Shown: in pieces, positions 3,444 to 59,956 of the stretch | How the letters are laid out: the number at the start of each line of letters is the position of its first letter | How positions within the stretch are numbered: position 1 is the stretch's first letter | DNA from: Entomortierella parvispora E1425 | Lineage: Eukaryota; Fungi; Mortierellomycota | NCBI GenBank assembly: GCA_020891255.1 | Contig: BQFW01000001.1 | Location: forward strand, 2,232,001-2,296,000 | DNA length: 64,000 nucleotides | Direction of reading: 5' to 3' | Program-made: the position numbers and the translations under genes | Notes under the pieces: model-generated | Database searches by the model: none | Seen by the model: only the letters and a program-made list of their open reading frames with translations | What the model was told of the DNA's origin: nothing

Positions 3444-6400
3444 CTATTCCGAATCATCTTCATCTGATCCATTACGAGCCTTGCCCTTCTTGGCCGAACC
3501 TATAACCATAACACGCAAAAAGAAATGATTAGTACATCATGAACGGGATGATAGAATGTATTGGAGGGCAAAGCAGGGCGCCATGATCATATCAATCAAA
3601 GAAACTGCTTCATACCCTTGCCAGCAGGCGCCTTGCGCTTTGCGGAAGTCTTGGTTGGGACCTCGGCCGATGCTGAAGGTGAGGCACTCTCACCGACAGG
3701 TTTCGTTCTGTTCTTTTCCCTGGCACGGGTACAGCTCTGACAGAACCAGTCCACATCAGGGACAACCTTTAAAGAAAAAAAGCAGAGCATGAGATTAGCG
3801 GCAATGTGGGCGGGGCCAAAACTCTTTTGCCAATTGAGAAGACATTGTCTGGTTGTTATTACCTGGAGTCTAGGGACTGTGCAGTGCAAATGGGTTCCAG
3901 AGTCGCATTTGTCACAGAGGAGCATGCTCTCTTCATCCTCGGCGCTAAGACACTCGATACAGTGCTCCTCCACATCCAAGACTGGCCACTTGGGCAAGTC
4001 CTGGATCTTGTCTTGACCAGGCTTGCACAGCATCAATGTCTGGCCCAATCCGCAAGAGACACTGAGCATGGTCAATCCCTCCATAGGACGGACTTTGTCA
4101 GGCTTGGTTGACGATTTCGCTTCACCTTCACCATAGCCAAGTTCACAATGGAGAGCGCCTTGACCCCAGGCGATCGTGCTAGGCTCAAGGGTTGGGAGAG
4201 CGAACAGGGTCACATTGCCGGCAGAGATGTCCTTGAAAGACCAGCCGTTGAGGTCATACAAAGTGCGAGGGTACATCCAAGGAGTTCCTCCGCCACCATC
4301 TCCAGTGGTCTTCCACTTGCCCCAGAGCCACAACTGAGATTGACCTAGAGACAATCCGTTTGGGCAAAAAAAGTTAGGACCGTGCTCTCATATCTGGGTA
4401 AGTTCGCCCTCCTGACGACAGCTAATGACCTACCATCCAAAGCCATGCTGAAGGAGCTTCCAGCAGCGATCTTGGTAGCCTTGGAAATCTTGTTGGATCC
4501 TGCAAATTGGTCAATTGGCATAGGTGTCCACAAATCCTCTTGTTTGGAATGACCCAAGCGACCATATCCGCCAAAGCCCCAAGAGTACACCAAACCTTCC
4601 TTATCACGGACAAGGGTATGGTTGGCGCCACAGGCCACCTCCACAACGAAAGCGTCCTTCAATGCTCCTCCAACGAGCACTATGGTCATAAAATTGAAGT
4701 TTAGTATGCAAAAAAAAAAAAAAATCATTCTAGTCAAGCGTCTCCAGTCACCCTAGAGCAAAGAAATTCATACCAGGGCTGGTTTGAGGAACATGAACAA
4801 GGCGAGTAGAGGTCTGAAAGTACTGTCCATTGGTCTTGTTACCAAGCTAAAAAGTGACAGAGATAAAGTCAGTTCTTGCCCAACATCAATATCAGAGGTA
4901 ATATGTCATGACCAGCCCTGGAGGCCATCATGAAAACACACCTGGCCGAATTCGGGAGAGCCAAACGCGAAGAGCTGTCCCTTGTCAGTCACAACCATGG
5001 TAAAGTCGGAGCCGCAGGCAGCAGAGGTGACCTTTTCCTTGCCCATACTGTTGATGTGCACAAATGAAGGATGATCTTTGTGGTTTGCATTTCCGAGCTG
5101 AAGGTAAATAAAAGCTGGTTGATCAGTTACCTATGCCTACACTGCTGACAAAATACTGCAGGCATGACCAATACACAACCGTACCTGTCCGGCCTTGTTG
5201 TCACCGGCACCGTAGATGGCACCATTCTCTGCCACCAGAATTGTGTGGTGTCTACCGACCTGCCCATTCACCAGTACCAAAGTTAACAAGAGTTTAGTTA
5301 TTTCATGCTCGCAGAATGGTGTACGATCATTTAACAAATTCGCCAACTTACAGCAGCGTCAACAAACTTGAGGTTTGTAGTCTTCTTTCCGACGGTAGTA
5401 TAGATGGTGGGAACCTTCATGGGATATGGATGGGGATCCGTGTCTCCAACGCCCAACTGTCCCTTCTCGTTTCTACAGGGAACGAAGAGTAGATTGTGTG
5501 TGTCAAAAAAAAAAAAAAAAAAAAGGATTCGATCACATTAAACCGATCAACTCTTGAGTATAATACCTTCCGAGAACCCAGACATCACCATCATCTGTGA
5601 AGACAGGGTATTAGTGGTTAATACATAGTAGTAGCAACTAAAGAGACATTGAGCAACTGCGCCCTACCAGTGATGAAGACACAGTGCCCAGCTGTTGGGC
5701 CAGTAATGGCCTTGACGACCCTGAAGTTGGAAGAGGAGTAAGGAAAATGATGTGAGCGATATGTAGGAGATAGGACATTGTTAGGATCTATTTGTTATCC
5801 TCGCAATTACTTCAGGTCGGCAAGTTCACGGATAACGTGGAATGTTTCAAGATGAGGCCTATGTTGCATGAGAAAGGAAAAGGGTAAAATACGGGTAAGG
5901 GTCAGCAGCACAATGAGGGTATATCGGCCAGATATCGATAGAGTCAACGTACAGAATCTCGCGGGTGTCGCCAGGTTTGGGCTTGCGGCCGATCATGTCC
6001 CAGTCTGTAGAAGGGTTGGAAGAGTAGAGTCATTTAGAAAAACTCTCTCGCCCGTAGGGTAATAAAGCAAAATGTCATTTGAAGATGGAGTCATGAAACC
6101 CTACCGACTGCTCCAGCGAGAAGAACCTTGCCTATTGATGCACAAAAGAGAGCGAAAAAAGACCGAGTTAGCGATATGAAGCTGCAATGGTGAAGAGGAA
6201 AAAGGACGGGAAAGAGAGTCGTATTCAGGGAGAGGCGCCGATATTAGTCTTGTGCCTGGAAATCACTTTTGCCGAATCCAGGCACAATGGCTGATCGAGA
6301 ATGGTTGGCTCCACAGTGGTAGAAACGCCACCGACGATGGCCAGAAGGAAAGGGCCCTGGGTGCCTCGAGGTCAAGCGAAACAAAACGAAACAGGCAGCG

Positions 6401-6737
6401 ACGAGCAAAAGAAAGAAAAGCGAGAGCGTTCCTCGATACACAGAATCAGGCCGCAGAGTCCACAGGTAGGACGCGAGGGAGACGCGCAGAGTGCCACCAA
6501 AAAGTTGGCGGCGTCTGCCTAGACTTTTTTTTTTTTTTTTTTTGGATGCATGGGTCAAGGGATGTACAGTGATGGCAAGGGGTGGGGCTGTTTCTGACAG
6601 CATTTTGGCGTCAGGGGACCATGCCAGCAGAGGAGAGCGAGAGACCCGAATGGGACAGGAAGAAGAGTCGGAGAAGGGTGCGGAGAGAGAAGAGCAAACT
6701 TACCCCATGTGGGCGAGTCAGTGGTGGTCGCGGCCAT
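3444..6737 (-). CDS. RCC1-repeat beta-propeller protein (RCC2/TD-60-like) with C-terminal PHD finger
   Basis: Spliced start MAATTTDSPTW-GKVLLAGAV-DWDMIGRK. RCC1 repeats (ACGANHTLVRDKEGLVYSWGFGGYGRLGH; WGQGALHCELGYGE). PHD CIEC...MLLCDKCDSGTHLHC...WFCQSC. Last exon GSAKKGKARNGSDEDDSE*. Many introns; boundaries approximate. Confidence 0.85.
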
Positions 6738-23191: not shown

Positions 23192-25918
23192 ATGGTGAAA
23201 ACAGATTTGTTAAAGGCGTTGACCGATGAGATCCCGAAGTGGCCCATAGCCAATAAGAAGGGAACCGAAGCTTCCGCTCGAGCATGGATCCGCGAGCTAG
23301 GAGACTTTTGGGCCGACGAAGGATTTTCGTTCCAGCTGTATGTGGTTCGGAGCAAGTTAGACGACCCCACGAAGAGTTGGTTGGCATGGTGGAGACACGC
23401 TGTCCCCGAGAATGAACAGAACTGGACCAAGTTAGTAAAGGATTTCGCGCAAGAACATGTCCAGGAACGTACCCCCGCCACGACCAAAGCAGAGATTATG
23501 AGAATGACCCAAGGAGACAAAGAGCCTTCGGACGACTACGTTAAACGGTTGGAGCTGAAGTTAGCAATGCTGCCGAAGGACGAGGATGGGAAATACAAAC
23601 TGAGTCCAGATGAAGAGGAGATGATCGCCCTTCAGTTTTGTACCGGTCTCCATCGCGATCACAAGTTCAAGACGAGGAACACAGAGCCATCCAAGACTAT
23701 TGCCGAAACGATCAAGAATGTATCCAAGCTGGGAGAGGTCAACCGCTGGGAGGACGTTCCCGACAGGCAGCGTGAGCTGAGAGATAGGAACTGGTCGGAA
23801 GAGACTCCAAGCCAAGGAGACAATATTTTGTTGGGTACCACGTCGGTATCGCGACCGCAGTTCGCTCGCTTCAAGAACGATTTCGGGAAAGAAGTTATCA
23901 ACAATGCATCAGATATTGACGACTTGGTCAAGTTGTTTGGGGCCTGGACAATCACCGACTTCACCGAAACCAAGCCAGAGAACCGAGTTACTGAAGCGAT
24001 CAAGCGGCTCGATGTCAACGTTGCCCGAAGAGTACTTCACAACACTTCGTTATCGAGGCATGTGTCGTTGGCGAACATCCCGCCGCCGCCCGCGCCTCCC
24101 ATACAAGGTAATCCGAACAGTGGAGCGGCTGTAGTCCTGGGGGGGTCTTATCCACCTTGCCCCGAATGCAACCAGATGGGACATGGGCGAACCCGTTGCC
24201 CCCGAGTGGAATGTCGCAATTGTGGCCAGCTGGGTCATATTTCGTATAACTGTCCAAACAACAGAGCGAACACAACGGTTGCACAAACAGAGCTGAATTC
24301 GAGAGCAGAGCAAGATTCGTCGAGGCGGGTTCGATTTGTTAATGGAGACGAAACCACTAGTACTCTTGTGACCACGAGAGCCACGGGACGAACAGCACCA
24401 GTTTCAGGGACTCTGCAAAGAAATAGTGCAGATCGGAGCAGTGTGCCAACGGGGATAGGATCCCAGAGGAGAGCCGAGACCGCAGGGGTAGCGCCACCTA
24501 TTCGAAGAATGGATGTGGACCCAGAGGTCGAACAGGAACAACCACAGGAGGGACCCCAGATGCCGAGAAAGCTAAAGATCAAGGAGATTGCCGCAATGAA
24601 GTTGAGGAAAGTTCGCATTCCAGTTGTGCCAGACCCCGAGATCATACGACAAGTCGAAGAGTTAGAATTCGACCCTGAGATCGTGGACAAGCACCGAGGA
24701 AGGATGGCCCCACAATTGAAGGCTGCCATAGGAGCGATTTGGACGGAGCGTCGAAACAAACGCAAGGTTGCCAAGGAGAAGCGAGGAGTAACGTTCGCGA
24801 ATCGCGCCAGTGTTCAAGCGGGAGACCAGGTTACGGCATGGATAGGCCACCACCGATTGGACAACTGCATTGTCGACCCAGGCAACGAGAAGACAATGAT
24901 TTCAGAGCATGCTGCCAGGCAAGTTGGTCTGGAGGTGCGTGCCACCGTAAACCAGATCAGACAGGCCGACGGGAAACCTATTTCCTTGGTGGGCACTACC
25001 GGACAATTTACATTCTCGGTAGCTGGCACCGAGGTAGAGATGAGTAGAGGTATGAACGTCATCGACTGCAAGCGATCGTATGATATGTTGCTTGGTGACG
25101 ACTGGCTGAAAGCTGTCCGTGCGAAAGGGAAGTGGACCAGCAACGCTGTGGCATACTACGTCACTCGGAATGGCAAGAAGGTCAAGCTAGGAATCGACCC
25201 CACTTTCGAGAGTAGCGATGACTCGAGCAGTGACGACTCAGGTAGCGAGGACGACGACAATATCTACCCGGTTTTTGACGAAGACGACGAAGTCGAGCAA
25301 GGCCACTCGTTGCGAGTGCAAGAGGTCCAGGTCGAGAGCAATGGAGTGATAGACGTCGTGAAGGAGTTGTCCCCCGAACAGCACAGTGAGGTCGACGTAC
25401 TATTAGAGTGCAACAAAGACCGATTCACCATGGATCTGAGCGAGTTGGAGGTCACCGACGTGTTTGAGCGTGAGATGAATGTCAGACCAGGGGCAAAACC
25501 GATCTATCCCACCGGATGCAGACAGTACGCGCCGAAGGAAAAAGAATACACGAAAAAGAATCTCGACGAGGAATTAGAGACTAGCAGGATCATTCCTACG
25601 GAATCTGAATGGTGCGCACCCTTGTCCTTTGCACCAAAGGAAGATGGCAACATTCGGAAGTGTGTCGCGTATATCGGATTGAGCAAAGTAACCGAGCGAG
25701 GAAGCTGGCTCATCAGAGACAAGACGGCCGGGAGCGTTACCACAGTATTGTTCCAGCGCGTCCTTTGCAGATTTGATATGCCTGACACCATTCGAACAGA
25801 TGGTGGATCAGCGTTCAGGACCGAGTTCAAAACAATATGTGAGCTGTCCGACACCCAACACTTTGTGGGGTCCACAAAAGAAGCACACAGTCAGGGGGTC
25901 AGTGGAAGCGATGAATAA
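23192..25918 (+). CDS. Gag-protease-truncated RT/integrase fusion ORF of the retrotransposon (908 aa)
   Basis: Two CCHC knuckles (CPECNQMGHGRTRC, CRNCGQLGHISYNC). Retropepsin-like IVDPGNEKTMIS...YDMLLGDDWL. RT N-terminal motif SEWCAPLSFAPKEDGNIRKCVAY, followed directly by integrase-core RDKTA...CRFDMPDTIRTDGGSAF. Confidence 0.9.
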   Translation: MVKTDLLKALTDEIPKWPIANKKGTEASARAWIRELGDFWADEGFSFQLYVVRSKLDDPTKSWLAWWRHAVPENEQNWTKLVKDFAQEHVQERTPATTKAEIMRMTQGDKEPSDDYVKRLELKLAMLPKDEDGKYKLSPDEEEMIALQFCTGLHRDHKFKTRNTEPSKTIAETIKNVSKLGEVNRWEDVPDRQRELRDRNWSEETPSQGDNILLGTTSVSRPQFARFKNDFGKEVINNASDIDDLVKLFGAWTITDFTETKPENRVTEAIKRLDVNVARRVLHNTSLSRHVSLANIPPPPAPPIQGNPNSGAAVVLGGSYPPCPECNQMGHGRTRCPRVECRNCGQLGHISYNCPNNRANTTVAQTELNSRAEQDSSRRVRFVNGDETTSTLVTTRATGRTAPVSGTLQRNSADRSSVPTGIGSQRRAETAGVAPPIRRMDVDPEVEQEQPQEGPQMPRKLKIKEIAAMKLRKVRIPVVPDPEIIRQVEELEFDPEIVDKHRGRMAPQLKAAIGAIWTERRNKRKVAKEKRGVTFANRASVQAGDQVTAWIGHHRLDNCIVDPGNEKTMISEHAARQVGLEVRATVNQIRQADGKPISLVGTTGQFTFSVAGTEVEMSRGMNVIDCKRSYDMLLGDDWLKAVRAKGKWTSNAVAYYVTRNGKKVKLGIDPTFESSDDSSSDDSGSEDDDNIYPVFDEDDEVEQGHSLRVQEVQVESNGVIDVVKELSPEQHSEVDVLLECNKDRFTMDLSELEVTDVFEREMNVRPGAKPIYPTGCRQYAPKEKEYTKKNLDEELETSRIIPTESEWCAPLSFAPKEDGNIRKCVAYIGLSKVTERGSWLIRDKTAGSVTTVLFQRVLCRFDMPDTIRTDGGSAFRTEFKTICELSDTQHFVGSTKEAHSQGVSGSDE

Positions 25919-50700: not shown

Positions 50701-52887
50701 TCCCTCTCGCCAGCCATATAATCCTGTACAGCCTCATCCGCATGCGAGGCATTGCTCACTCTGCCACGTCGCCCAGCATTGGCATTGATTCCTCCATGGA
50801 CACTATCCATCATGTCGCCATCGCGCCCGGCACGCACATGAAGACCACGTTTCTGGAGCCAAAGATTCCGGAGCTTAGGAACAAAGAGGATACAGTACTC
50901 CAGGAAACTGGCCGCAAAGATACAGACCACTGTGACGTGATATGAAACTTGGTATAAACTCTGCGGGAATGTCTGCACGATGACGATGATGATAATGAAG
51001 AATGTCACGACGCTAATATACACAGCAAGGTTAAAAAGTTAGCTATAATAGTTGCGACTCGACTCTTGGGCTGTGGATGCAGGGTTGAAGGGGTTGAGCT
51101 TACTAGATAGTTGTTGCAATGGCTCGGGCCTCATTCCACAGGCGGGTCACATTTCGAGTCTTGAAGGCGAGATAAACGCCAAAGAAGGTCAATATAACGG
51201 GTGTAGCGCCAATGACGACATCCCAGACATATTGGGGGTCGTCTGAAGAACATTGAACCCAAAATTGATCGTTGTTGGTCCGAATCAGATCTGGCTCAAG
51301 ATAATGGACGAAGCAATGAACGATGCAGGGAATCTAGTTGCCGAGGTTGAAAAAACATAAGTAAATGATGCAGACTGTCATACCGCGCTTCATTTCGAGT
51401 CTAGGTCAGGGCATCAACAACGTCGAATACATACCAAAGTGATTACGACTGGAACCGCCACCACGCGCAAGAGATACTTGTTGGAGACCGCGTGGTTAAT
51501 GATACTAACGCTGTTGAAGATGCGATAGATTCGGTAGTTCTTGACAACTAGCGCCGACAGATTGATTGTCAGCCCGATCATCACCACCATCAGACCAATC
51601 CTGCAAATGCCAGGGGGTGGGACGTCTGCTCTCAGATATATCCATGACAGCGTCAGTGACAATCCAATCAACTCCAGCACACAGAACAGGGGACTAGATA
51701 TAAAGCAGAATTGGTGTCAGCTTAGATCGTGCCATCCATCCACACATTGCTCTTTTGAACCGGAGAGTCTTTTTATGAAACGAAGTACACGGGTACGGTT
51801 TCTGTTACCTGGCAGACTTGATGATAATATTGTCACGATTCACGATCACAATGACGGCGGTTGAAATGATGGCCAAAAAGAGAATGGACGTCAATACGAT
51901 CATTGTCACCCCAAACGGAGAACTGCTCTGAGGGTACAATTCTGGAGTAAGGAATCAAATTTGCTGAATTAATATCAGAGTGCAAGTAACCCCTGTCCAT
52001 CCCACATCCAGGCGAGTGGCTACTCTTAGAATCCTTACCATCCGCAGAAGGGGAATCTCTAGGTATATGAGTGCTGCCACCTTTGAACTGAACAGGGTTG
52101 AATATACTGACAGTTTCGTTATCAACCTTGCCGTTGGGGACGCTGCTGTGATTTTGGAAACTAAAGATGCCCACTTGACTGATACACAGAAGGACGGTGT
52201 AAGCCTCGTTGCCTGTCAGTGACAAAAAAAAAAGAGTTGATATCGCACTTACACTTTTGCCGGATTGCCATCTTTATCGAGAGTAAAGTTGCCAGTCGGC
52301 GAGTTGTACGTTCTTGCTCCCAAAAATGGGATGGTCAAATTCTGGCTTCGTCTCCCATGCCGAATTTCTCTCAGCCGCATCAGCCTTTCAGTCTCGTTCG
52401 TAATTTTGTTTGCGTTTTGAACAAGCTATCACAGAGTCTCTGTTAATATCCATTACAATACCAATGGTCCTTCCTCATCATCCATAGAGATTCAAAGGAC
52501 ATACCACTGCGTATCCCTCTACCATGACCTGCAAGCATGTGTATGCAAATGTCTCGTGCCATGTTAGTTGAGTTGAGCCCGATGAAGGATATCTATTAAT
52601 CGGGTAGGTGTTAGGAGCTGTAACCTTCCTCGTAACTGGAGACGCCAAGACAAAATTCTCTTAAGACTTACTGTTCTGGATTCAAGCTAATCCATTCTGT
52701 GATAAAATTGTCATAGGCTGGGTTGCCAGGTATCTCCCACATAACATCAGCCATGATAAGGCCGTTGAAGTCAGATGGGTTGTTCAAAAGAGCAATTGAG
52801 TCCGACAGGTCGATAGGGGTAAGCCAAACGTGGTTCTTTTGGAAAAGCCCGGCATTTCTGCATGGTTGCAACAGCAACAACAACAAC

Positions 52888-52930
<43 letters not shown>

Positions 52931-54332
52931 ACAAAAAAAAGAGGAAGAAGGAGATTAATTACACATACGGTTCTAACTCATACCCAAGAGATTTGAATCC
53001 TCATACCTAATTGTATTCAGGATTGCGACTTGTTCGGGTCTGCTAGAAACCAGGATATGGATGCGAGTGTCCGAGTACTGGATCGTTCTTAGGGCTGACT
53101 GTGTACTTTGAATCATCATATCGAGCGTATCATGGCCATGGTCATCTGGCAATTGGATTTCAACCTTGAGGAGGTCGATGTTCTTGTCTTCGCATATTTT
53201 GGCAATCAATTTTTCACCTAGAGTTGATACGCAGAGCACTCCTACACGTTAAACTGCTGCGAAATAGACAAGAGGCATGGAACAACATAGCGGCTCTGTG
53301 TACCTAAAATCCCTGTTACATCCGACGTGTGGAGCACAGATATCCTCTTCCAACCATAGTGGTCGACAACGTAGGCCAGCGATTGCACAAAAGACAGTAC
53401 TGTAGGAGCCGTTCGAAACAAGTATGGGAAATCACCCAAGTATTCCATATGTAAGTTGTCTATCACCCGACAATTGGACAGTTAGTATCATGCCTAGGAC
53501 TTCCTCAGTAACGGGTTCAACCCACAAAAACACACTAGCAACTTACATGAAGAGAATGCGCACTGCGGCACACCGACACTCGATGTCATGAGTGCTTCGG
53601 CCGCGGTGAGATCTGAAGACACATCTCCTATAACGCCAGCAACATCCATGCTCAGCAAACGAGTCGTTGCAGTGATCGCGGACGCGCCCCCAGAGACATT
53701 GGTATGGGGTATGGGGCGCTGGCTGTCTCGAAGAACCAGAGAAACATTCATGCCTATTAACCGATTCAAGTCGTTAGAAAGGAGGTATTAAATGGTGCGC
53801 CATCGCTTTACACTGGCAGACTTACCTGGTATAACTTGTTGGTTGTTCATATCTCTGACAGCCATACGAAGAACCTAACGGATTCCTCAACACAACAAAG
53901 TTAGCAGGGCCAACCTACACACAAAGAGCGGGCGTCTTCTCCTTGACTTACCGACAAGTTGATCCTAGACATCGTCGTTGTGTAGGCCTTGCCTTTCACT
54001 GGTGTGAATGGCATCAGAACGCCGATTTTGAGTGTGCCGGGTTCACCTCGCCAAGTCTCGTTGAACTCCTGGTCAGTCAGCCCAGGGGCCCTCCATGGAG
54101 GATCATAAATAATCGCTCTATATGGGTCTGAGTCATCAAGGTCGTTTCGAAATCCCAGAGCCAGAACGGAGGGCGGGCTCTTTCGGACCGTTGAGGAAAT
54201 GTCGGTCACATTGCTGGTGCTGTGTGGATCTACTACCACTCCATGGCAGACAACTTGACTGAGAAGAACGGCAAAGGCCAAGAGAAATGTTGTCGTGGCT
54301 GAAAAGCGAGACAGCTTAGAGCGACCAGACAT
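47719..54332 (-). CDS. Class C (GABA-B/glutamate-like) GPCR: signal peptide, Venus-flytrap (ANF receptor) ectodomain, 7TM, long cytoplasmic tail
   Basis: Signal MSGRSKLSRFSATTTFLLAFAVLLSQVVCHG. VFT motifs LKIGVLMPF, VAGVIGDVSSDLT, FPYLFRTAP, HYGWKRISVL, YNSPTGNFTLDKDGNP. 7TM motifs NRDNIIIKSAS, LVVKNYRIYRIF, YLAFKTRNVTRLWNEARAI, LFVPKL. More than a dozen exons. Confidence 0.88.
52872..52932. repeat. (AAC)n-(AC)n microsatellite in a GPCR intron
   Basis: caacaacaac followed by a long acacac run. Confidence 0.9.
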
Positions 54333-56433
54333 GAAGCGAGCACCTGGCTTTGCTGTGGAGGAATGATCAGTGTAAGAGGTTGCCTCTACCCATATCCGGG
54401 CTGCAGGCACGCCCGACAGCTGCATAAAATTCTAGCTGGGCTGGCGACGTGATGAATCTGAAGAAGGGGAAGGAGGTGGAAGAGGATAAAAGAAAAAAAA
54501 TGAGCCCTTTCTTTCCTTGTTTGTTTGTTACGATAGTTGCAGCCCAGCCTGTTCTCCTTTGGACGCGTTGTTTGAGCCAGAAATAGCGTGGCGCAATGAA
54601 CGTCCCTAGGGAGATGTATGTGTATACTTACACACAGCACTCTACGAGGCAGGGGGGAGGGCGAAGATGGCAGGGCAGAGTTGCAAAATGATGCAACTAC
54701 AGACCAACCAAGAACCAAGACTGACAGATCAGGTCAGAACGACAGGCTGGCGGTGGCGGGAGGGCTCGTTTGACGGTGTAGGTCTGGGTCTGGGGAAAGA
54801 GAATGCTCTCGCAGGGGAAGGAGAGTCGAGGCAGCCCGGGAACAGGGACGGAAACAAGAGCGGAGAGATGCAAGAGGAAGCAAGGAGAATGAGGGATGAA
54901 TGGAGGTGAATGAGGGGATGAGGCGAATGGTCAAAAGGGAATGCGCCTTCTTTCTTGTCTGCCATCCATCCATCGTCGCTTTGCGGCACTGAAACCGCCC
55001 GCTTCCACTGACTGGACGGGTCGAGATACTGGGCTTTTTCTGTTCTCGCCCTTCCCTTCCGCCCCACACCCCCTCCTCCCCTTCTTGCTCTTTTCCTTGG
55101 AGCCATTCTCATGACCTGGCTGCACGGATGTAAAGCCGACCGGGCTGCCGATGGTCATCCGCAGGGGTCCTCTGGTCTCTGGCTGTGGGGGACAGCAGAC
55201 GTGCCTAACTGGTCCGTGGATGACATTCCCAAAGCGAGTCTCTTCTTAAATCTGGTTGATCTTTGGATTCCAGCTTTATTGGATGACAACGGACGTCCAC
55301 CTTCTGTTGCTCCTGACCTGGTTGGTCAGTTTGTAGATCCTGAATGTGCCATATCCATCTAACCTGTCCATCTGTAGTCATTTATTTAAAATAAAAAAAA
55401 AGTTCTCTGCCTTCAGTGTTATCAGTGTTATCCCGTCAAGGTATTTGTAGGGTGGTCATTGAGCATCTGGATGGTCGATTCCTGGACGAATCAACCCGAA
55501 GGAGGAAATCTTTTGTCTGTTTCCCCACAGCGCTTTTCTTCAATTGTCAATTGGGGCGATTACAATGAGATCATTGTCAAATACGTGTTATTGGTCAAAT
55601 ACCATCTTCTGTCAAATACGAGTACCCCCCATCAGTAAAATAATCAACAGCGGCATCTTTTCTCTTGTTACCAGGTTTACCAGGTAAAGTCGACAACCAT
55701 GCTCCATGTTGGAATCCGTTGGAGAGGAATGTAATGTGATGCAGCCGTTGAACAGACATGCAATGCTTGCTTTGGAATGGAGGTGACAATGAAACATGGT
55801 CCAAGAATACGCACCCCGACATCAAAGAGACTGGCTGATGTGAAAGGTGACTACGAATGGAATGAACTACGAGAGAGGCGATGAGTAATGCAGAGAGAGG
55901 GAAGGGGACTGAAAGAACCAAACATGCAGCATGCACAGCGAATGAACAAAACAAACCGCCCCCCTCGCCCGGGGTCCAAGCGCGTCTAGAAAAGGCTTTG
56001 ACAGACCCCCACAGAGTCTGCATTCCATAAAAGGGGCTCAAAGCGGAGGACCACTCGCTTCTGCCCGTCAGCAAGACCACTGAGAAAATAAACGCGACAA
56101 CTCCAGGTAGGGAATGGATGGTACTGTACTTACGAGTGTCAACTCGGAGCACCATCAAAGAAGAGATGCCGTCAGGAAAGCCAGATGCACTTGTCTGGAC
56201 TGTCTGACGGGATAAAAAAAGAAAGGGGTGAGGGCCTCTCTCTTGATCTTTACTGCAGGCATGCTCACAGCGCAACAGCGAACGCCCGCGCCATCCCCCC
56301 TGGATGATCCCCCTTGATCTGCTCTTCCTTCTGCTGTTGACGGAAGGTTCTGTTTGATTTGCACTCTTTCCCATCTTATACTCTTGTCCACTTTACCCAC
56401 CACCACCACCACTCTTAGTTCCCGTACTCCACA

Positions 56434-58173
56434 ATGAAACTTCAATACTTTCTTGTCCTGGTTGTCCTTTTGGGCTTCTCAGCCGCAGCCCCAACGTAAG
56501 GCGATGATAATCCAACAGCACCAGCTGTCTGCGGCGGCTGGTACCATATAGAAACACACCTTTGCCACGTGGATCCCATCACAGCTTGAGTAGCTTACGA
56601 TTCCCCTCTCTCTCTATCATTAGGAGGTAAACTGATGGCCGCTGCTTGTTCTTGGGACAAAGGCCAGAGGCTTGGTGAAATCATGGCTAATCTAGCAACC
56701 TGTCTCCCTCCTTTGGTCTTTTCTTCTTGTCCTCAGCGAGTAAGTCACATCTACAACCTGTCCTCCACATCACATAACGGCGGCCGTGAGATTGGAACTA
56801 ACGTAATGTGCCCCTCTGGTGTTTCCTCCAATAGGGACGTGGAGTATGTATTATCCAGGTCTTCTTCTACGGCAATGACACGGCACTTGGGAGACTGTAA
56901 CTAATACGGTTGTTTACCTTTCACTGTTGATGTTTCCTTTCCACAGTGCCAACGAGTAAGTTTAGTCGAGTGTCGTATTTTCAACTCTCAGGAATGAAGA
57001 CAAAGCACTCGAGACACGGTGATGAATGCAGTCTGACTGACTTGTTTTTCTCTTGGTATTTCTATTTCTCTACATCAGCTAGTAAGTCGAGTCGTCTTGC
57101 TCCTAAGGACATGGACGTTGGCTGCCATGTGATCATGATTAACTCAGTTGCCTGTCCTTCTTTTTCACTTTCTTTCTATTGTAGCGAGTAAGATGAATCG
57201 AGCTCTCCAATTGAAAGGAAACATAGGGTTCTCCAGATGTTATCTAACAGGACAAATGATCTATTCTTCTTGGCAATTGTCATTGACGGTTGCAGTATGT
57301 AAGTTGGATCTGCCTCTCAAGGTCGTAGGCACACTTGTAAACATGAAACTAATTCTGATTACTCTGGGGGTTTCTCTTGATATTTCTCGTTCGCTCAACC
57401 AGGACGTAAGCGGATTCTATCTCACATCTCCCGAACAAAGATGTGTCATTGTAGGGTCGCAATTAACATGGATTCTATGATTTTTCTCTATCTCTCGGCG
57501 TTTCATTTCCGTTTTCCAGTGGGTAAGTTGAAAGTAGTATGGGCTTTCAAAGATAAAGACACAATTGCGCGACCATACCTGATCTGATTGAACCTTTTCA
57601 TTTCCTTGACATCTCCATTCCATGGTATCAGCATGTAAGTTGGATAGATCGGCCTTTCCAGCATGACACGACAGTCGCGAAGCAGTAGCTAACACGGTCT
57701 CTTCGTCCTTCTTGATATTGTTCTTCCATGTCAACAGGTAGTAAGTTGGATTTGAGTAGAACTCTCAAGGACAAAGGCAGACAATCGCTAAATCGTAACT
57801 AATGGGGCTGCATGACTTTTTTTTTCACTTTTGTTCCCATTCTACGGCAACAGCTAGTAAGTGCTATGATCTGATTGTTGCAAGACAAAGACCCCGCTAG
57901 CCGTGATGTCGTAACTAACGTTGCCGGGTAACCTTCCTCTTGGTCACTTAAACAGCGGGTAGGATGAAATGACCTCTTTTTTTCAGGGACAGGGTAACCG
58001 TGGAACCGAAGCTAACACACTTGAATCATGTTTTTTCTTGGAATTTCAACTCTAACTGAACAGCATGTATGTTGAATCGTACTCCGGACCCGAAAAGGAT
58101 TGTATTGTTGTAAAATCTCTACTGACGATGGCATTCTTTTCACTTTTTTTTTTCTTGCCGTGCAACTAGCTAA
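56434..58173 (+). CDS. Micro-exon gene encoding a 39-aa secreted peptide precursor MKLQYFLVLVVLLGFSAAAPTSEDVDANDYDMTGMYYGI
   Basis: Exons: 56434-56495 (signal peptide, ends AC), 56624-6 GAG, 56737-9 CGA, 56835-43 GGACGTGGA, 56947-55 TGCCAACGA, 57079-81 CTA, 57185-7 CGA, 57296-8 TAT, 57403-5 GAC, 57520-2 TGG, 57632-4 CAT, 57738-40 GTA, 57854-6 CTA, 57956-8 CGG, 58064-6 CAT, 58170- CTAATAG. Each internal exon is flanked by YAG and GTAAGT/GTATGT-like sites. The spliced CDS is 120 nt and ends in TAA TAG. Confidence 0.88.
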
Positions 58174-58615
58174 TAGGGTAAGAGTCTGCCCCCACGTATG
58201 GGGTCAGTCTGCTGCGGACATAGAGCACTGTCGAATATGTCGTACTCATCTTACTATCACATTGTATGGGCCTTTCAAGTCGGATAGCCACACCAAGCCC
58301 GCTAGCGCCCAAATCCATTGTCAGACGTCTTTCGTGATCAATGGATTGTTTCAAGAACCAAGCACTCCCTAAAAATCGACGCCGTATAGTTTTGGAATAT
58401 TTTGGAAAAATCTACAAGCAGATAAACCCTTCATGTTCGCAGACAGCAAGTGCTCTGAAATAGTTTTGACTGATATATGAAATGGTGGATTCCAGGTTTA
58501 TTGTGCACCAAAGTTCTATGTACACTTGCGGACAACATGTCTGCATGTCTGGTGCCTGATATGGGAGAGAACGATACTGCTCAATTGCGCGAGAAAGGAT
58601 CTTTCAAATGTCTAT

Positions 58616-59956
58616 TTACTTGGCTCGCGTACGGACATGTGTGTTGGTGCGAGCCTTGAATTCATCCACCTTCTCCAAAAGAGCTTCAGCACGGTTCACC
58701 AAATCCTTGCGTTGCTTTCGGATCGAATCATCTCCTCCACTGTCGACCGAGTCAATCTTGAGCATAGCCTTGGTCAAGTTCTCCTCCGTCATCAAGATCT
58801 GCTTCTTGTTGGGGATGACGCCTCCAATAACATGATCGAGCTCCTGTGCAAGGCCATCGAGGCTAAATCGGATCTCAGCCAGTTCCTTGTTGCTCCTTGC
58901 TTGAACTTCTGGGTCTGGTTTCATTTCCTCTTCTTCAGAGTACTCTGGATACTCGTCTTCGTTATCGAGGCTCTGCTGCTTCTTCTGATCCTCCTCTTCC
59001 TCTTCATCTTCCTCTTCGTCTTTCTCTTCGTCCTCCTCCTCCTCCTGCTCTTCTTCTTCTGAGGTTTCAACCGGCTTATGATTGTGATGACTCTGATGAT
59101 TCTGGTGCTTTGGTTTCTGGCTTTGAGCCTGAGCCAGACTGTAGCTGGGATGATGCTGACCGTGCTGTCTTTGTGTTCGATTCTGAGTGTACCCAGGATG
59201 GCGCTGGTTCTGCTGACTTTGCAGACTGTGGCCAGGATGCTTCTGGCCATGCTGTACGTTCTTTTTTAACTGAGGCTGCGAGTGCACCTTCCAAGTAGCT
59301 GCGGGAACAGTAGCAGGGGACTTCGTCGTTGGCGAGGACATGGCGCCCTCACCAAAGGCAGCCTGAACAAGAGAGTCCATGTCGTCCGTCGCCTCTGGAG
59401 CTTCCACAGGCTTGATTGTCAATCCCTGTTGAGCACGTTGGCGCTGGCGTCGACCTTGCCTCTTGCGTTGGGGCACTTGCTGTCCAGCCAGGTTGTTCGC
59501 CATGGGAGGCGGATGGTGGTGATCCGAGTGATCTGGCCCGTTGGAAGGCTGCTGACGTTCCTGTTGCTGCTTCAATGCTTGGAACTGCTGCTGTAAGTGG
59601 CTTTGGCGGGGAGGACGGTGGATCTGATGACGATGTTGTTGGTGGTGCAGCTCTTCTTGATTCTGATGTTGTTGGTGCTGGCGAGGAGCCTGGCGTCTTT
59701 GCTGTTGATGCGGTTGCTGGGAATTGGCCCCAAGATGGTCTGCCATGGCAAGGGGATTCTGGTGATATTGAGCACGGGAGTGTTGCTTCAACGGCTGTGG
59801 CTCCTCCTCTTCGCTGTACGTTGGACGTTCATCTACTCCAGAGGAAAACGGGTCTCCAAAGAAAGAGTCTGCAAAGGACGGGAAAAAGTCTCTTCGCTCT
59901 TGAGGCCGACGGGAGCCGCGGGCGGCAGTCCTTGGATCCGAGAAGATGGAGTACAT
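58616..59956 (-). CDS. BAG-domain co-chaperone with Q/H-rich and acidic disordered N-terminus, single exon
   Basis: C-terminal KQILMTEENLTKAMLKIDSVDSGGDDSIRKQRKDLVNRAEALLEKVDEFK matches the BAG domain pattern. Confidence 0.85.
   Translation of the reverse strand: MYSIFSDPRTAARGSRRPQERRDFFPSFADSFFGDPFSSGVDERPTYSEEEEPQPLKQHSRAQYHQNPLAMADHLGANSQQPHQQQRRQAPRQHQQHQNQEELHHQQHRHQIHRPPRQSHLQQQFQALKQQQERQQPSNGPDHSDHHHPPPMANNLAGQQVPQRKRQGRRQRQRAQQGLTIKPVEAPEATDDMDSLVQAAFGEGAMSSPTTKSPATVPAATWKVHSQPQLKKNVQHGQKHPGHSLQSQQNQRHPGYTQNRTQRQHGQHHPSYSLAQAQSQKPKHQNHQSHHNHKPVETSEEEEQEEEEDEEKDEEEDEEEEEDQKKQQSLDNEDEYPEYSEEEEMKPDPEVQARSNKELAEIRFSLDGLAQELDHVIGGVIPNKKQILMTEENLTKAMLKIDSVDSGGDDSIRKQRKDLVNRAEALLEKVDEFKARTNTHVRTRAK

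Follow-up and report, generated by a model that had tools for sequence, protein, structure and literature searches.

The closest described counterparts of the locus discussed here are the micro-exon genes (MEGs) of Schistosoma mansoni, which have exons of 3-81 bp, secreted products and introns of up to 5 kb, according to the accessible part of the source (PMC10526429). Here, we analyze an array of intron-like units in a 64,000-nucleotide (nt) stretch of the genome of the fungus Entomortierella parvispora E1425 (the window; window position x is record position 2,232,000 + x of contig BQFW01000001.1, assembly GCA_020891255.1). An earlier note, made from the sequence alone, had proposed that the array is a hidden gene for a secreted peptide and had likened it to the MEGs. 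We find that the array, at positions 56434-58176, is probably a protein-coding gene for a secreted micro-exon peptide that was missed by annotation. The likeness to the MEGs stands as far as the architecture goes, since in both cases a first exon for a signal peptide is followed by very short symmetric exons, the products (predicted, for the fungus) are small, variable and secreted, and exons can be lost without a frameshift. It ends with the introns, because those of the MEGs are long, unrelated and, in the accessible text, not described as copies of one another, whereas those of the array belong to a single family, copied in tandem, and measure ~105 nt. In addition, nearly all exons are exactly 3 nt here and the host is a fungus, and we claim neither a sequence relationship nor common descent. 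Alternative splicing is central to the MEGs, while the fungal array is known here from its DNA sequence alone.

Several other systems share single traits with the array. Spliceosomes can join exons of 1-3 nt, such as the 1-nt exon of Fusarium CYP621A and the 3-nt exon of human MAP4K5 (PMC12940212 and PMC8632122, in their accessible parts), but these are single exons in ordinary genes, while 12-14 would follow one another in the array and make up most of its coding sequence. Long runs of homologous introns between short exons are also found in SNHG14, the host gene of the small nucleolar RNAs (snoRNAs) SNORD115/116, whose introns are tandemly repeated according to the accessible excerpts. The introns of the array differ in carrying no snoRNA or other Rfam family, and its exons carry a conserved signal peptide and a reading frame. 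Fungal introner-like elements likewise form spliceosomal intron families with sequence similarity within a genome, and they are scattered singly in unrelated genes. Measured against their definition in PMC3609843, the array units differ by showing no dispersal in the sequence searched, no stable structure and no excess length, and they were met only as tandem runs following a signal-peptide exon. Fungal precursors processed by Kex2 are similar to the product of a paralogous array described below, with its signal peptide, short pro-region ending in KR and 19-amino-acid (aa) peptide. The window product differs from them, having no K or R after the signal peptide and no repeated peptide unit, and we know of no Kex2-processed fungal precursor with a gene structure like that of the array. 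Finally, a literature search that covered few subscription journals found no description of micro-exon genes in Mortierellaceae, or of such a gene in fungi.

The array spans 1743 nt of the forward strand and consists of a 62-nt exon, 15 GT...AG units, 14 short spacers between them (12 of 3 nt and two of 9 nt) and a terminal exon, such that 14/14 internal exons measure 3 or 9 nt. Every coordinate and count given by the earlier note (15 introns of 95-128 nt, twelve 3-nt and two 9-nt exons) was confirmed, as was its estimate of about 7% coding sequence (7.1%). The parts are, in order:

56434-56495 (+): exon 1, 62 nt, ATG in CACAATG context, MKLQYFLVLVVLLGFSAAAP plus 2 nt, ending in phase 2
56496-56623 (+): intron 1, 128 nt, GTAAGG...TTAG, no match to the hidden Markov model (HMM) of the family
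56624-56626 (+): micro-exon GAG, the least certain one, next donor GTAAAC, frame kept if skipped
56627-56736 (+): intron 2, 110 nt, GTAAAC...GCTAAT...TCAG, family member with partial HMM match
56737-56739 (+): micro-exon CGA, 3 nt
56740-56834 (+): intron 3, 95 nt, GTAAGT...ACTAAC...ATAG
56835-56843 (+): 9-nt exon GGACGTGGA
56844-56946 (+): intron 4, 103 nt, GTATGT...ACTAAT...ACAG
56947-56955 (+): 9-nt exon TGCCAACGA
56956-57078 (+): intron 5, 123 nt, GTAAGT...ACTGAC...TCAG
57079-57081 (+): micro-exon CTA
57082-57184 (+): intron 6, 103 nt, GTAAGT...(ATTAAC)...GTAG
57185-57187 (+): micro-exon CGA
57188-57295 (+): intron 7, 108 nt, GTAAGA...TCTAAC...GCAG
57296-57298 (+): micro-exon TAT
57299-57402 (+): intron 8, 104 nt, GTAAGT...CCAG
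57403-57405 (+): micro-exon GAC
57406-57519 (+): intron 9, 114 nt, GTAAGC...(ATTAAC)...CCAG
57520-57522 (+): micro-exon TGG
57523-57631 (+): intron 10, 109 nt, GTAAGT...TCAG
57632-57634 (+): micro-exon CAT
57635-57737 (+): intron 11, 103 nt, GTAAGT...GCTAAC...ACAG
57738-57740 (+): micro-exon GTA
57741-57853 (+): intron 12, 113 nt, GTAAGT...ACTAAT...ACAG, the best family match of the window
57854-57856 (+): micro-exon CTA
57857-57955 (+): intron 13, 99 nt, GTAAGT...ACTAAC...ACAG
57956-57958 (+): micro-exon CGG
57959-58063 (+): intron 14, 105 nt, GTAGGA...GCTAAC...ACAG
58064-58066 (+): micro-exon CAT
58067-58169 (+): intron 15, 103 nt, GTATGT...ACTGAC...CTAG
58170-58176 (+): start of the terminal exon, C TAA TAG, the last codon letter and a tandem stop

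This arrangement stands out from its surroundings. The motif YAG-NNN-GT(R/A) was found 12 times in the 1.75-kb array versus 29 times in all the rest of the window (~126 kb, counting both strands), and the pattern of three consecutive units had two matches in the window versus none in 100 shuffles.

When the exons are joined, they give 123 nt that read MKLQYFLVLVVLLGFSAAAPTSEDVDANDYDMTGMYYGI and then two stops, for a predicted product of 39 aa; the absence of internal stops and the tandem TAA TAG agree with what had been reported. Exon 1 reads as a predicted signal peptide, with MK, an 11-residue core and SAAAP, and the mean hydropathy of residues 5-15 is 2.9. This hydrophobic core, together with a homologous exon in the second array of this genome, bears out the signal peptide proposed before. 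The peptide predicted to be secreted is short (19-22 aa) and acidic, about APTSEDVDANDYDMTGMYYGI, with five D/E residues. Omission of the GAG micro-exon, which the earlier note had rightly singled out as the least certain for its GTAAAC donor, removes one serine only and leaves the frame intact. Codon log-odds, calculated against a table from eight long open reading frames (ORFs), were +9.7 bits for the frame of the ATG versus -13.3 and -2.5 for the other two frames. The preference for codons ending in C or G (16/19) was correctly counted, but the parallel drawn with genes of the window does not extend to their average, as the G+C content at third codon positions is only 0.54 there (crude ORF set).

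The 15 units of the window are diverged copies of one intron family, with a pairwise identity of ~41%. Beyond the splice signals, alignment of the units gives a consensus with the elements GTAAGTTGAAT, CTCTCAAGGACAAAGACA, GTAACTAAC and TTCTCTTGRTATTTC. The array was not detected by Tandem Repeats Finder, because the units are too diverged. The splice sites have hardly varied: GT and AG are present in 15/15 units, A at +3 in 15/15 and G at +5 in 14/15. A branch-like CTRAY is located 33-51 nt upstream of the 3′ site in 12/15 units, the remaining three having TTAAC or CTTAC in its place, as judged by eye, and pyrimidines account for 57-80% of the last 40 nt before the 3′ site. With their GT, AG, branch-like motif, pyrimidine tract and typical length, the units look like U2-type introns. 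Descent alone cannot hold 60 positions invariant in units that are otherwise down to ~40% identity, and we infer from this that splicing has been under selection, and hence that the window array is transcribed.

The neighboring gene models, which were solved from annotated product lengths or sequences, provide a reference for these signals. Introns of 162 and 106 nt were found in the PCNA gene, of 99 and 90 nt in a gene for a 462-aa product, and of 96 and 85 nt in an MSP gene that has two long doubtful ones in addition; the 95-128 nt of the array are within this range (mostly 85-162 nt). The donors in these models are GTAATC, GTAAAG, GTAAGC, GTAAGA, GTATGA and GTAAGT, and the weak GTAATC and GTAAAG, both in the PCNA model, are comparable to the GTAAAC of the array. 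If anything, the array donors appear stronger than the average donor of the neighbors, which fits with free variation of the three exon letters before each donor. As for the annotated MSP-domain gene (L123:10001-12298), introns of 455 and 390 nt are needed for its product; their donors, GTACAG and GTTGGG, are weak, and the two introns may be artifacts of the gene model.

A second array was found ~13 kb beyond the window, on the + strand at L125:4192-6700 (L125:1-10000 is record 2306037-2316036). It lies in 10 kb without a called gene, and such gene-free stretches of the annotation may be a quick route to further arrays. A profile built from the units of the window and of L039, a metagenome locus discussed below, matches L125 at about 4700-6690. 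As in the window array, the first exon of the L125 array measures 62 nt and ends in phase 2; it reads MKIQFLLVLVAFLGFTVAAP plus two letters. The two first exons are identical at 43/62 nt (69%), versus 44/100 upstream, and their differences are distributed 5/3/9 over codon positions 1/2/3. The proportions of synonymous and nonsynonymous differences (pS 0.64, pN 0.16) give a pN/pS of 0.25 over 20 codons only; as a sequence pattern, this constraint is the signature of a translated sequence under purifying selection.

Read as it stands, the L125 array gives VPEKR, then CGFDILGIIKAGCFDPPIK, then a stop, which reads as a Kex2-type site and, after it, a 19-aa peptide containing two cysteines. A 5-nt exon at L125:6503-6507, a run of five C, shifts the frame. 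A homopolymer length error is possible at this position of the Nanopore-based, Illumina-polished assembly, and the terminal exon TTAAATAG has stops in both frames. Comparison of the L125 units with each other revealed that the intron columns are 78% identical, while letters 2 and 3 of the micro-exons (codon positions 1 and 2) are only 24% identical, which is the chance level; letter 1, the wobble position, is 68% identical and mostly C. This codon-position-specific variation is suggestive, but not decisive, as a protein-coding signal. The L125 array also contains higher-order repeats (CGG TTT CGA ... occurs twice).

The family is present outside this genome. A search of metagenomes for three units in a row gave more than 120 loci, 120 of which were compared with profiles. 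A profile of the 14 family units of the window alone matched 19 units in L039 and L098, both from sample Ga0302182, with E-values down to 3e-13, and had no match in the other 118 metagenome loci. The flanks of L039 and L098 have no similarity to the window. In pairs of units from these two loci, the introns are 81% identical and the micro-exons only 39%. What is conserved in L125, L039 and L098 is the intron, and what varies is the micro-exon, in the letters that determine the amino acid. Scanning 596 Gb of prokaryote genomes with the same pattern gave 29 loci, almost all of them plain repeats with identical triplets, and the profile of window and L039 units had 0 matches among the 29. The same kind of search covered the 64-kb window and ~20 kb of adjoining sequence, and found no family copy there outside the arrays.

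The intron family was thus found in four arrays (window, L125, L039 and L098), and in 4/4 a stop is located at the first codon boundary of the terminal exon. This exon always begins with YTAA (C TAA TAG in the window, T TAA ATAG in L125, C TAA AC in L039 and L098), so that the frame set by exon 1 stops at once; L039 and L098 are cut inside their arrays, and the phase is assumed there. Just past the tandem stop of the window, at 58178-58279 (+), a donor-like GTAAGA is followed ~100 nt on by CTTAC...TTTCAAG, which could be a degenerate sixteenth unit or an intron of the 3′ untranslated region. GTAATA or GTAGGA is also present just past the stop in L039 and L098.

The homologous exon of the paralogue, the family of four arrays, the immediate stops, the codon-position variation and the frame-specific codon signal together support the secreted micro-exon peptide gene proposed by the earlier note, short of proving it. 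Several observations weigh against it. Conservation in relatives, to which that note had looked for a check, failed at the syntenic locus: in the nearest available relative (Logan ERR12035940, ~72% identical coding DNA), the genes for a class C G-protein-coupled receptor (GPCR) and a BAG protein that flank the array in the window are separated by only ~1 kb, which holds neither an array nor a signal-peptide exon. The window gene would accordingly be lineage-specific, and what appears to be conserved is the family, not this locus. In Dissophora globulifera, no array was found near the Frizzled orthologue, where the neighboring genes differ. The open frame is weak evidence on its own, because 42% of shuffles of the micro-exon letters are also free of stops. 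The C at the first micro-exon letter is explicable by a preference of the 3′ splice site instead of codon bias. The donor that follows the GAG micro-exon is weak (GTAAAC), and the window product, unlike that of the paralogue, has neither a Kex2 site nor a cysteine. Finally, the literature search mentioned above found no published report of consecutive 3-nt exons being spliced.

Some of these points would also fit a locus that is transcribed and spliced but whose product is RNA, either as a non-coding host transcript or as a source of intron-derived RNAs, with no role for the 39-aa frame. We consider this unlikely. An open frame of 19 codons is expected by chance at the frequency just given, conservation of intron interiors between arrays is rare for ordinary introns, and tandemly repeated introns are known from snoRNA host genes, as far as the accessible sources go. 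But Rfam 15, with permissive filters, gave one sub-threshold chance match in the array and no small-RNA family, and no box C/D-like or structured element was found in the introns. Six units folded no better than their shuffles (z-scores from -0.43 to +2.44). The constraint on exon 1 between the paralogues is of the protein type, the variation affects codon positions 1 and 2 and not the wobble position, and all four arrays have the immediate stop.

The family could also be real and the window copy dead: either a pseudogene, decaying or silent, or a recent duplicate restricted to this lineage and devoid of function. The greater divergence of the window units (41% identity versus 78% in L125), the one weak donor, the lack of the Kex2 site and cysteines of the paralogue and the empty syntenic site of the relative all go in this direction. 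This is improbable, however, since all 15 GT/AG pairs and the branch motifs have stayed intact, along with ATG, signal peptide, frame and stop, despite heavy divergence elsewhere, unlike what neutral decay leaves.

A satellite that arose from an intron with three flanking bases, is not spliced as modeled and has kept splice-like motifs by descent would account for the tandem layout and the period of ~105-110 bp, and many matches to the same pattern in metagenomes and bacteria are indeed plain repeats with identical triplets. We regard it as very improbable for this array, as the units are too diverged for descent to explain the invariant GT and AG, the array is always downstream of a conserved signal-peptide exon on the same strand, and the triplets vary more than any other part, whereas a homogenized satellite would show the reverse. 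Repeated insertion of mobile introner-like elements into a short gene, suggested by a recognizable intron family at several loci from at least two sources, is hardly credible, given the absence of copies outside the arrays in the sequence searched, the lack of a stable predicted structure, units no longer than ordinary introns, the implausibility of same-phase insertion at every codon and the higher-order repeats of L125, which point to tandem duplication.

Returning to the secreted-peptide gene, we infer that the window array is transcribed, spliced, translated and secreted, and that its diversity comes from recombination, in the following way. The gene would encode a 39-aa precursor, with the signal peptide on exon 1 and the rest on fourteen exons of 3 or 9 nt, and the short U2-type introns between them would all derive from a single ancestral intron by tandem duplication and divergence. 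Intron definition would govern the splicing of the pre-mRNA, which would probably lose its introns one at a time and in sequence, as neighboring introns are probably not recognized simultaneously because a 3′ site and the next 5′ site are 3 nt apart. The spliced mRNA would then be translated, the signal peptide cleaved off the precursor and the acidic peptide of 19-22 aa released. The gene family would keep three parts constant (signal-peptide exon, intron sequence, immediate stop) and leave the amino-acid-determining letters free to vary. Unequal recombination between homologous introns of the same phase would let single residues be gained, lost or exchanged with the frame preserved, and growth by this route fits with the higher-order repeats of the L125 array. 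The two adjacent 9-nt exons may each have arisen by precise loss of two introns, which would imply a spliced RNA intermediate, or alternatively by a 6-nt insertion. If other small, variable secreted peptides are a guide, one might guess at a role in signaling or antagonism.

The genome annotation has no gene model between the BAG gene, which is convergent with the array and ends at 58616, and the class C GPCR gene. Exons of 3 nt are missed by short-read aligners, and the same is said of tiny exons in plants and animals in the accessible part of that literature. The E. parvispora genome was annotated with AUGUSTUS and hints from RNA-seq reads mapped with HISAT2, the library being DRA013164 (PMC8759367). 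The absence of a model at the array can be attributed to this pipeline, which is not expected to thread 3-nt exons. Pfam gave no match for six unspliced ORFs in and beside the array on either strand. On the - strand of the window, the class C GPCR gene is itself probably modeled without its 5′ exons: blocks conserved with the relative L002 reach 54426, past the annotated start at 52754, and an ATG ORF at 53901-54425 is among them. The idea that the peptide is the ligand of this receptor found no support, as the pairing is not maintained in the relative, which has the GPCR but lacks the array. Elsewhere in the window, at 23192-25918 (+), a 908-aa ORF with matches to retrotransposon gag, zinc-knuckle and aspartyl-protease domains corresponds to an element of the long-terminal-repeat type.

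Other micro-exon-like arrays were observed in the scans. Among the 120 metagenome loci, 11 arrays have at least five units and mostly distinct triplets. In L053:2778-6363 (+), 59 consecutive 3-nt exons read as whole codons in phase 0, with no stop in frame 0 and ~53-nt introns of a different family, beside genes that look fungal; L033, L028, L074 and L115 (samples Ga0193742 and Ga0193743) combine the same ~53-nt intron family with 3-nt exons. The 59 exons of L053 give an amphipathic sequence rich in K/E/L/D/F/W, seemingly inside a larger gene. On L074, a neighboring gene is Prp31/Nop-like; the Atlas clusters nearest to it are fungal, most commonly from Basidiomycota. Variable 3-nt spacers are also found in L046:62-1780 (+), L006, L057, L037 and L070, which have unrelated intron families, periods of 107-230 bp and G+C contents of 0.31-0.49. 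In L150 and L149, on contig CBDCKB010000001.1 of a metagenome-assembled genome labeled Rhodobacterales, at least 79 units of ~102 bp end in YAG-NNN-GTAAGT, with four alternating triplets (ATG, GAG, CGG and CCG); this array has the look of eukaryotic DNA or of a satellite and seems misplaced in a bacterial bin. The unrelated intron families of the metagenome contigs suggest that the array design may have arisen more than once.

If splicing of the window array is confirmed, for which RNA-seq data allowing a first test already exist (DRA013164), it would set a new extreme for the spliceosome, with a dozen consecutive 3-nt exons and 3′ and next 5′ sites three bases apart. It would also bring to light a class of genes for secreted peptides that escapes gene predictors, ORF finders and short-read aligners alike, and would offer a testable case for why the intron, and not the exon, is the conserved part of a gene. 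Moreover, homologous introns of the same phase would provide a concrete mechanism for changing a peptide by one residue at a time. A wider possibility, which we put forward tentatively and hold to be rather doubtful for now, is that fungi possess a whole class of such one-codon-per-exon genes hidden from annotation, in which tandem introns would act as a device for evolvability: single residues could be added, deleted or shuffled by recombination, and possibly by regulated exon skipping, so that one locus may explore, or even express, a library of peptides.

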